From Orbicella franksi (taxonomy: Eukaryota): DNA of 64,000 nucleotides. Where the stretch lies: positions 6,138,001 to 6,202,000 of the forward strand of contig OZ116708.1 of assembly GCA_964199315.1 (NCBI GenBank), given 5' to 3'. Positions 8,682 through 63,333 of the stretch are shown piece after piece. Position 1 is the first letter of the stretch. Each line of letters opens with the position of its first letter. The notes beneath the pieces are model-generated. The model was not told where the DNA came from. It searched no databases and saw only the letters and a list, made by a program, of their open reading frames with translations. Position numbers and translations under genes: made by a program.

Positions 8682-8970
8682 CTACACTTCTGACTGACTG
8701 TGCTCGCCTGTTAAGTTAAGTCTTCCGTAGACATTATCAGGTCTCCCATGTGCATTACCCAATGATTGATAATGATCCCCAGGATCAAAATAAGGGTTAC
8801 GAAAACCAACATCGGCGTGTGGTACTGGCTGTTGAAATGCATCAATCTCCATATATTCTGGTTCGTTGTATGTTTGCCCATATGCCGGATTGTCGTGTCC
8901 CACATTTCTCTCCGTGCCGTAATTCTGTGTTCTAGCATTGGAGGTCGCTCGTCTCCTAACACTGCAAATG
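8682..8970 (-). CDS. exon e58: terminal exon, cytoplasmic tail
   Basis: Acceptor follows a ~30-T tract; phase 2 matches e57; contains NPAY and NPYF; ends QSEV-stop. Confidence 0.85.

Positions 8971-63333: not shown

Follow-up and report, generated by a model that had tools for sequence, protein, structure and literature searches.

The question raised by this stretch of the genome of the coral Orbicella franksi (64,000 nucleotides, positions 6,138,001 to 6,202,000 of contig OZ116708.1, assembly GCA_964199315.1, called here the window) is whether the propeller, Sushi and HYR exons found along its minus strand belong to one gene, and what kind of protein such a gene would make. A first-pass annotation, made from the letters alone, had read them as a single giant receptor, a lineage-specific fusion of LRP-type propellers with a stalk of the SVEP1 kind. 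Our analysis indicates that the locus is a real, expressed gene of 62 exons for a membrane receptor of 5,334 residues. We consider it probable that it is one intact, transcribed gene for a type-I membrane glycoprotein of an old and uncharacterised metazoan receptor family, enlarged into a recognition receptor of endocytic type. The single giant type-I gene, with LRP propellers on a Sushi/HYR/GCC stalk, was upheld; its supposed restriction to one lineage was not.

A repeating pattern is visible in the stop-free segments of the minus strand. Exons were called by requiring canonical GT-AG sites, domain-sized lengths and compatible phases, and a solution was obtained for every candidate exon. Generic splice-site scoring alone was rejected because it chose truncated exons, and the conserved cores from paralog BLAST were discarded as exon limits because they ran into introns. 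We added 170 kb of sequence upstream of the window (coordinates above 64000 refer to this extension; contig position = value + 6,138,000). The result is a phase-consistent chain of 61 domain-sized exons, from 66281 to a stop codon at 8682, with all introns GT-AG and an open reading frame (ORF) of 5,307 codons in which the only stop is the terminal one. The 58 exons proposed before, from 63333 down to 8682, were matched exactly, and the gene does run beyond the window as had been expected, with four more exons upstream: an EGF exon, one further propeller in two exons and, after the recommended extension in the 5' direction, a signal-peptide exon at 69215-69137 encoding MSVIRWSIPTLFILALTYGQSVNVYG. 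This last is the sole ATG-initiated, hydrophobic, phase-1-ending mini-exon in the 66.3-87 kb scanned, and its sequence, ORF and donor are retained at the syntenic site in two tandem paralogs (96% and 77-82% nucleotide identity). Relatives in other corals start alike, e.g., Oculina MSTIWWMCTLSLFTLIY...TLCSPPCLL. The first propeller comes directly after the signal peptide and therefore there is no N-terminal cluster of LDL-A (LA) repeats. The full model has 62 exons and a coding sequence of 16,005 nt (5,334 aa). Nearly all exons are of phase 1-1, the split propellers being 1-2 plus 2-1, and no exon resembling a signal peptide was found inside the gene.

The encoded protein consists of the signal peptide, three modules (A, B and C), a SEA-fold domain, an Ephrin_rec_like domain (formerly GCC2_GCC3), a transmembrane helix and a cytoplasmic tail of 96 aa. 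Each module begins with three propeller/EGF pairs and continues with a stalk of Sushi (S) and HYR (H) domains, in the order S S H S S S H S S S in module A, S H S S S H S S S in B and S S S H S S S H S S H H S in C. This makes 9 propellers (seven in two exons and two in a single exon, eight of them within the window), 24 Sushi and 8 HYR domains. When Pfam was run exon by exon, Ldl_recept_b was detected in 16/16 propeller exons, FXa_inhibition/EGF in 9/9 EGF exons, Sushi in 23 of the 24 predicted Sushi exons, HYR in 8/8 and Ephrin_rec_like in one, while exon 59, the transmembrane exon and the tail gave no match. The eight YWTD propeller/EGF pairs of the window, the Sushi and HYR blocks interleaved with them and the final GCC domain, transmembrane segment and tail had all been recognized in the first-pass annotation and were recovered here. 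The same applies to the absence of LDL-A repeats: PF00057 was found in none of 83 segments (the exons plus 22 extra Cys-rich minus-strand ORFs), and the PROSITE pattern PS01209 and DxSDE motifs were absent from the six frames of 8001-70000. VWA and pentraxin were not among the Pfam families of the exons and the 22 Cys-rich ORFs.

The gene is transcribed. The RNA and DNA runs with its exons carry coral or coral-metagenome labels, exon 21 being present in 12 RNA runs and exon 38 in six. RNA contigs of two studies (runs X4 and X8), mapped over 47101-53000, contained seven joints, all of them coinciding with predicted exon borders (52790/52153, 51902/51399, 51205/50792, 50607/50459, 50274/49624, 48833/48327 and 48202/47589), and a loose end at 47184 that continues into exon 24. 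The joint 50274/49624, present in two runs from the two studies, connects the last Sushi of module A (exon 20) with the next propeller (exon 21). It cannot come from a one-module gene, in which the first propeller is joined to the signal-peptide exon. One contig joint running backwards (52974 to 51213, back 1762) was rejected as back-splicing and was read as a paralog contig placed on the repeated Sushi exons.

The stretch before the GCC domain, annotated at first as a linker, is indeed there, but it is more than a plain linker. An exhaustive protein search with exon 59 (160 aa) retrieved 49 relatives, mostly unnamed exon-sized fragments (leads P0027, P0030 and P0047), and aligning them showed cysteines that are conserved and a basic cluster that hardly varies. 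The AlphaFold2 model computed from this alignment is confident and has the arrangement beta-alpha-beta / loop / beta-alpha-beta-beta (predicted local distance difference test, pLDDT, 83.4; predicted template modelling score, pTM, 0.75), with the basic cluster in the low-confidence loop. In an exhaustive VIA-align comparison the six best of 48,161 chains were SEA domains: MUC16 SEA5 (Z 9.7), a murine SEA domain (9.0), the SEA region of zebrafish GPR126 (8.9), TMPRSS6 (8.5), a second MUC16 entry (7.7) and the SEA domain of a transmembrane protease (7.6), with unrelated folds at Z <=6.9. Foldseek gave nothing significant for this domain against the PDB, and against the Swiss-Prot models it placed ZPBP1/2 best (E 5e-4, TM 0.52) and the mucin and GPR126 SEA regions lower, so that the assignment relies on the VIA-align ranking. 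The model reproduces the alpha/beta sandwich of SEA domains (beta-alpha-beta-beta-alpha-beta) and superposes on those of MUC16, TMPRSS6 and GPR126/ADGRG6 (PDB 6V55) with a root mean square deviation of 2.5-2.9 A over 106-112 residues. Sequence identity to known SEA domains is only 6-12%, and both the Pfam SEA signature and the G/SVVV (GSVVV) autoproteolysis motif are absent from exon 59, which has instead a multibasic site and extra disulfide-bonded cysteines. By its modelled structure, exon 59 encodes a SEA-fold domain that is invisible to Pfam.

The basic site, of the R-x-K/R-R type, is conserved in the homologues of coral, anemone, starfish and scallop. It reads LRRR in the window gene and in Acropora, KRRRR in Stylophora, RKRR in Actinia, RRRRR in Nematostella and a starfish, and RRRR in a scallop protein. 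The SEA domain of GPR126 and the heterodimerisation domain of Notch are cut by furin in an equivalent loop, and from this analogy we infer that the loop of exon 59 may be processed by a convertase as well. As in GPR126/ADGRG6, the domain is adjacent to the membrane and the protease site lies in a surface loop, in the window gene as a motif. A proprotein convertase cutting there would leave a non-covalent receptor of two chains, as happens at the S1 site of Notch and in GPR126 and LRP1.

Like the members of the LDLR/LRP group, the protein has a single transmembrane helix and a cytoplasmic NPxY (NPAY and NPYF, see Table 1 for all the tail motifs) that resembles theirs. The position of the membrane-proximal NPxY is common to Stylophora (RNPVY/F), a Logan transcript (SNPTY), Actinia (LNPTY) and a starfish (RNPVY), and stony corals share in addition EPxYMEI, DHYQxL, a YxRL-type motif (YGRL here) and a C-terminal SE[AV]. 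By comparison of these tails, the membrane-proximal NPxY is a likely internalisation signal of LDLR type. Together, the NPxY and YxxΦ motifs would recruit phosphotyrosine-binding (PTB) and AP-2 adaptors and direct the receptor to clathrin endocytosis.

The propeller triplet is colinear with residues 21-924 of LRP6 (39.9% identical) and 451-1353 of LRP4 (40.6%), i.e., with the first three propeller/EGF units of LRP5/LRP6 and LRP4. As in LRP5/6, the propellers follow directly the signal peptide of a single-pass type I protein. The succession of YWTD propeller and EGF that characterizes the LDL-receptor family is thus present, and the LDL-A repeats are missing, which keeps the protein outside that family. 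LRP5/6 have four propeller/EGF pairs, three LA repeats and five PPP(S/T)P motifs in the tail, and the PPPSP motifs are required for Wnt co-receptor signalling. In contrast, the window gene has three propellers per module, a stalk of Sushi, HYR, SEA and Ephrin_rec_like in place of the LA repeats and, as was noticed in the first reading, a tail free of PPP[ST]P. A Wnt co-receptor of LRP5/6 type was rejected on the lack of PPPSP and LA repeats. SVEP1/Polydom, for its part, is a secreted protein with an N-terminal VWA and a central pentraxin. It has Sushi, HYR and Ephrin_rec_like in common with the window protein (23, 8 and 1 Pfam matches here), which differs in being anchored to the membrane by a transmembrane helix with a cytoplasmic tail, in having propellers, and in lacking VWA, pentraxin and the long C-terminal Sushi tail. 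A Sushi-HYR-Ephrin_rec_like (TKE) core is also the defining trait of a set of polydom-like matrix proteins in Nematostella, whose levels increase as the larva turns into a polyp (PMC12549020); LRP or YWTD are not mentioned in the text of that work.

Proteins of this layout were found in other animals. Fragmentary models of Oculina have Ldl_recept_b beside Sushi, and a protein of 1,519 aa from Actinostola contains propellers, EGF, HYR and Sushi. We searched for the family with the latter and then with a Stylophora protein of 2,190 aa. Relatives of 1,700-2,200 aa with Ldl_recept_b, EGF, HYR, Sushi and Ephrin_rec_like were found in at least seven hexacorallian genera (Stylophora, Acropora with five species, Pocillopora, Montipora, Oculina, Actinia and Nematostella), and others of 2,470-2,650 aa in starfish and sea urchin. 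In a partial protein from a gastropod, propellers occur together with HYR and Ephrin_rec_like. LDL-A is absent from the precomputed Pfam lists of these relatives. In BLASTP, the ~2,100-aa relatives align end to end with model residues 3131-5299 (numbered without the signal peptide), that is with module C plus the tail, at identities of 54-74% in corals, 37% in Actinia and ~30% in echinoderms. The domain set and order are the same in the Stylophora pistillata 'SVEP1-like isoform' (P0188/P0189, 2,183/2,190 aa), Acropora millepora LOC114968057 (P0195), Actinia tenebrosa 'SVEP1-like' (P0184), Nematostella 'LRP6 isoform X2' (P0314), a starfish 'SVEP1-like' (P0315) and Lytechinus (P0360); the members listed comprise P0184-P0204, P0314, P0315 and others. 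Their common layout is a signal peptide, three YWTD/EGF pairs, Sushi/HYR, a SEA-like domain with basic site, Ephrin_rec_like, a transmembrane helix and a tail with NPxY, without LDL-A. These predicted relatives have one propeller-stalk module, whereas the window gene has three and is ~2.5 times longer; models with two modules (~3,500 aa) are predicted for Oculina (P0304) and Montipora (P0306).

The colinear BLASTP alignments and the shared SEA-like domain with its basic site place the window gene in this family of receptors with a propeller head and a Sushi-HYR stalk. Since colinear relatives occur across corals, anemones and echinoderms, the architecture is ancient and was already in the databases, where automatic annotation has named them 'SVEP1-like', 'LRP4/5/6(-like)' or 'uncharacterized'. 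The first-pass annotation had suspected that coral predictions labelled as LRP-like might include it, and this was correct. The idea that nothing with such a layout exists fails before the single-module models of ~2,000-2,200 aa and the two-module ones, and with at least seven hexacorallian genera, starfish and sea urchins sharing it the mosaic is a conserved trait of the family and not a lineage-specific fusion. As far as sequence can tell, the proteins called "LRP6" and "SVEP1-like" form one coherent, unstudied receptor family.

Within O. franksi the family appears to be expanding. In the genome searched (497 Mb, 805 contigs) the SEA-like exon has 19 matches, all open, 17 of which lie on the same contig between 6.15 and 8.27 Mb and mark a cluster of ~17 paralogs that is probably still duplicating. 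The second gene upstream is a canonical copy with a single module, and its exon order is identical to that of module C. A cluster of this size that continues to duplicate suggests a role in recognition, be it of microbes, symbionts or matrix. The next gene upstream (contig 6265617-6315806) is composed of two blocks 15 kb apart, one with signal peptide, three propellers and two Sushi, whose protein is 95-100% identical to module A, and the other with three propellers, a short stalk, SEA-like domain, transmembrane segment and tail. This neighbour may be another gene with several modules, or else a segmental copy of 12 kb that arose recently. Between the window gene and the next paralog there are protein-kinase-like ORFs (GLPHFKWDDLG...GSFGAV...) at contig 6225300-6225920 and 6241476-6241739 on the minus strand, so that genes of an unrelated family are interspersed among the paralogs. 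A second group of propeller-exon matches, without a match to the SEA-like exon, is located ~2.5 Mb away on the same contig (3488011-3642122) and could represent a related subfamily that differs at the C-terminus.

The three modules bear the marks of internal duplication. An 8.4-kb block (24692-33025) is 93.8% identical, introns included, to 42487-50870. The block covers a module boundary, with two Sushi exons and the propellers that follow them, and therefore a two-module gene predates the last duplication. Between copies B and C the synonymous divergence (dS) is 0.079 and the nonsynonymous one (dN) 0.020, a dN/dS of 0.25 over 3,009 nt that indicates purifying selection, both copies having been retained as coding. 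Intron identity is 95.1% (range 87-99%), with 91 nt of indels. Identity per exon is patchy (90.7-98.9%), which may reflect gene conversion between the copies. The first propeller is encoded by a single exon in B and C and is split into two in module A (contig 6202857-6204281) and in the neighbouring paralogs, pointing to an intron loss that predates the youngest duplication. As the exons are almost uniformly of phase 1-1, duplications from intron to intron stay in frame, and the propeller-plus-stalk block seems to have been duplicated in tandem twice to give the three-module form. What is new here is this form, together with the SEA-like domain, whose basic site is conserved, and the active cluster of ~17 paralogs.

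Mobile elements are found in the introns. The retrotransposon between exons 35 and 36 has three long ORFs (aspartyl protease; reverse transcriptase plus RNase H; integrase) in a region of raised G+C (0.45-0.47, 33235-37248) and stays outside the gene product. The 3.3-kb intron between exons 58 and 59 contains an inverted repeat with arms of ~0.8 kb (12858-13669 versus 15486-14663, 85.7% identity) and internal tandem copies, a foldback-type element spanning 12858-15486. Downstream of the 3' end of the gene there is an ORF similar to non-LTR (long terminal repeat) retrotransposon endonucleases (...LILGDFNLDLL..., 1307-1756, minus strand).

Several observations weigh against one giant receptor of three modules that is matured by a convertase and endocytosed. 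No full-length transcript was seen. The RNA contigs measure 243-982 nt, none of them and no read crosses two module boundaries in the region mapped, and their mismatches mix copy-B and copy-C letters. Therefore the spliced RNA that had been called for across the boundaries proves the passage from Sushi to propeller without assigning it to one or the other of the two equivalent boundaries, and these contigs do not prove that all three modules are in one mRNA. In principle the B/C duplication could be an assembly error. The basic site of the window gene, L-R-R-R, lacks the P4 arginine of a textbook furin site, the two closest paralogs have a degenerate NPxY (DPAY, NQAY), and full-text searches of the literature found no description of the architecture or the family. 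The three-module form would be overstated if B and C were mis-joined haplotypes or paralogs, or if the mRNAs were shorter, the product then having one or two modules and ~2,100-3,800 aa. The one-module size of the canonical relatives, the largest models elsewhere having two modules, would fit with this, as would the near-identical segments that abound in the cluster, including the first block of the upstream neighbour, and the mixture of letters in the RNA. We nevertheless consider it unlikely. The ~5% difference between introns and the 91 nt of indels are above the level assumed for alleles, the flanks differ, the retrotransposon is only in the stalk of B and the order of domains after B and C is not the same. 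Besides, the dN/dS is that of two copies evolving as coding sequence, the joint from Sushi to propeller 1 is impossible from a one-module gene and a signal-peptide exon is lacking inside the locus. A decaying or non-functional member of the cluster, its frame intact only because the duplication is young, is highly improbable and already largely refuted. The two elements in the introns, the cluster setting and the degenerate NPxY of the sister paralogs could be taken as signs of decay, but the 16-kb ORF runs through 62 exons with canonical splice sites and no stop or frameshift, selection between the duplicates is purifying and spliced RNA comes from several studies.

If the gene is taken as one intact three-module receptor, the ectodomain would be a long multivalent rod for ligand recognition, and the whole could work as an endocytic or scavenging receptor similar to the LDLR family with LA repeats replaced by Sushi/HYR modules. 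The same parts could also serve mainly for adhesion or matrix anchoring together with signalling, either as a tether like polydom/SVEP1 with force-sensitive shedding at the SEA domain, or as a decoy for ligands of LRP4/5/6 (Wnt, Dkk, agrin-type). The SEA domains of mucins, the Notch-like heterodimerisation domains and GPR126 are linked to shedding and mechanosensing, and exon 59 matches that fold; the propellers are arranged colinearly with the three leading propeller-EGF units of LRP5/6, and PDZ scaffolds could dock on the C-terminal S-E-V/A. The Sushi-HYR-Ephrin_rec_like core is moreover typical of the Nematostella matrix proteins (PMC12549020). This function in place of cargo uptake looks quite unlikely to us, given a tail without PPPSP in which the sole motif conserved across phyla is the LDLR-type NPxY, and a protein anchored to the membrane, unlike SVEP1, and with neither VWA nor pentraxin. 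Going further than the endocytic-type receptor, we would only tentatively, and with some doubt, propose that the unnamed ancient family (cnidarians, echinoderms, possibly molluscs; not found in vertebrates here) is a second LDLR-like endocytic branch, with Sushi/HYR for LA and a cryptic SEA domain matured by convertase, whose coral cluster would recognise microbes or symbionts.

Table 1. Exons of the receptor gene and other features of the locus, in window coordinates (values above 64000 as explained in the text). Splice chain stands for GT-AG sites, compatible phases and domain-sized lengths.
Feature	Position	Strand	Basis
Exon 1: signal peptide	69137..69215	-	ORF and donor kept in two tandem paralogs
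Upstream propeller 1 exon (module A)	65888..66281	-	splice chain
Upstream propeller 1, second exon	64857..65254	-	splice chain
Upstream EGF exon	64070..64195	-	splice chain
Exon 5: propeller 2 N-terminal half (module A)	62928..63333	-	GT-AG, phase 1->2; Ldl_recept_b
Exon 6: propeller 2 C-terminal half	61771..62165	-	splice chain, Pfam
Exon 7: EGF	61206..61331	-	splice chain, Pfam (FXa_inhibition)
Exon 8: propeller 3 N-terminal half	59158..59581	-	acceptor at 59581 by length homology with exons 26 and 43 (424 nt)
Exon 9: propeller 3 C-terminal half	58346..58743	-	splice chain, Pfam
Exon 10: EGF	57293..57421	-	splice chain, Pfam
Exon 11: Sushi	56735..56908	-	splice chain, Pfam scan
Exon 12: Sushi	56192..56380	-	splice chain, Pfam scan
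Exon 13: HYR	54796..55047	-	splice chain, Pfam
Exon 14: Sushi	53977..54168	-	splice chain, Pfam scan
Exon 15: Sushi	53224..53409	-	splice chain, Pfam scan
Exon 16: Sushi	52790..52972	-	splice chain, Pfam scan; 3' joint 52790/52153 in RNA contig
Exon 17: HYR	51902..52153	-	both joints in RNA contigs
Exon 18: Sushi	51205..51399	-	both joints in RNA contigs
Exon 19: Sushi	50607..50792	-	both joints in RNA contigs
Exon 20: Sushi, last of module A	50274..50459	-	joint 50274/49624, two RNA runs, two studies
Exon 21: propeller 4, single exon, first of module B	48833..49624	-	splice chain, Pfam, RNA contigs
Exon 22: EGF	48202..48327	-	both joints in RNA contigs
Exon 23: propeller 5 N-terminal half	47184..47589	-	RNA 5' joint; loose end 47184 continues into exon 24 (MMYWTDWGA)
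Exon 24: propeller 5 C-terminal half	44505..44899	-	splice chain, Pfam, RNA loose end
Exon 25: EGF	44266..44391	-	splice chain, Pfam
Exon 26: propeller 6 N-terminal half	43658..44081	-	splice chain, Pfam
Exon 27: propeller 6 C-terminal half	42832..43226	-	splice chain, Pfam
Exon 28: EGF	42098..42226	-	splice chain, Pfam
Exon 29: Sushi	41351..41524	-	splice chain, Pfam
Exon 30: HYR	40339..40590	-	splice chain, Pfam
Exon 31: Sushi	39900..40094	-	splice chain, Pfam scan
Exon 32: Sushi	39270..39455	-	splice chain, Pfam scan
Exon 33: Sushi	38953..39138	-	splice chain, Pfam scan
Exon 34: HYR	38212..38463	-	splice chain, Pfam
Exon 35: Sushi	37789..37983	-	splice chain, Pfam scan
Exon 36: Sushi	32755..32940	-	splice chain, Pfam scan
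Exon 37: Sushi, last of module B	32423..32608	-	splice chain, Pfam scan
Exon 38: propeller 7, single exon, first of module C	30982..31773	-	splice chain, Pfam
Exon 39: EGF	30350..30475	-	splice chain, Pfam
Exon 40: propeller 8 N-terminal half	29333..29738	-	splice chain, Pfam
Exon 41: propeller 8 C-terminal half	26666..27060	-	splice chain, Pfam
Exon 42: EGF	26427..26552	-	splice chain, Pfam
Exon 43: propeller 9 N-terminal half	25825..26248	-	splice chain, Pfam
Exon 44: propeller 9 C-terminal half	25031..25425	-	splice chain, Pfam
Exon 45: EGF	24326..24454	-	splice chain, Pfam
Exon 46: Sushi	23533..23706	-	splice chain, Pfam scan
Exon 47: Sushi	22988..23173	-	splice chain, Pfam scan
Exon 48: Sushi	22502..22684	-	splice chain, Pfam scan
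Exon 49: HYR	21686..21937	-	splice chain, Pfam
Exon 50: Sushi	21400..21594	-	splice chain, Pfam scan
Exon 51: Sushi	20916..21101	-	splice chain, Pfam scan
Exon 52: Sushi	20247..20444	-	splice chain, Pfam scan
Exon 53: HYR	19753..20001	-	splice chain, Pfam
Exon 54: Sushi	19172..19351	-	splice chain, Pfam scan
Exon 55: Sushi	18626..18829	-	splice chain, Pfam scan
Exon 56: HYR	17744..17986	-	splice chain, Pfam
Exon 57: HYR	16935..17171	-	splice chain, Pfam
Exon 58: Sushi	15951..16139	-	splice chain, Pfam scan
Exon 59: SEA-fold juxtamembrane domain, multibasic loop GTLRRRD	12149..12628	-	AlphaFold2 model and structural matches; no Pfam
Exon 60: Ephrin_rec_like (GCC2/GCC3) Cys-rich	11498..11656	-	PF07699, E 1e-7
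Exon 61: transmembrane helix and RKRR stop-transfer	10943..11075	-	sequence
Exon 62: cytoplasmic tail and stop (NPAY, YMEI, NPYF, YQSL, YGRL, C-terminal SEV)	8682..8970	-	sequence, alignment
Tandem-duplicate copy C (younger pair)	24692..33025	-	93.8% identity to 42487-50870, introns included
Tandem-duplicate copy B (younger pair)	42487..50870	-	pairs with copy C
LTR-retrotransposon ORFs (protease, reverse transcriptase, RNase H, integrase)	33235..37248	+	antisense, in the 4.8-kb intron between exons 35 and 36

These data provide an RNA-supported model of 62 exons for a locus that ranks among the largest receptor genes of a coral genome. They also indicate that the proteins labelled 'LRP6' or 'SVEP1-like' in the annotations of corals, anemones and echinoderms are neither Wnt co-receptors nor polydom. 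Such labels are frequent in the gene lists of coral stress and immunity studies, and the identity of the proteins changes how these lists are to be read. The SEA-fold domain with its deeply conserved multibasic site offers a maturation step that is directly testable. Finally, the multiplication of modules that the exon phases permit, ongoing within a cluster of ~17 genes, makes this locus a case for how giant mosaic receptors grow.

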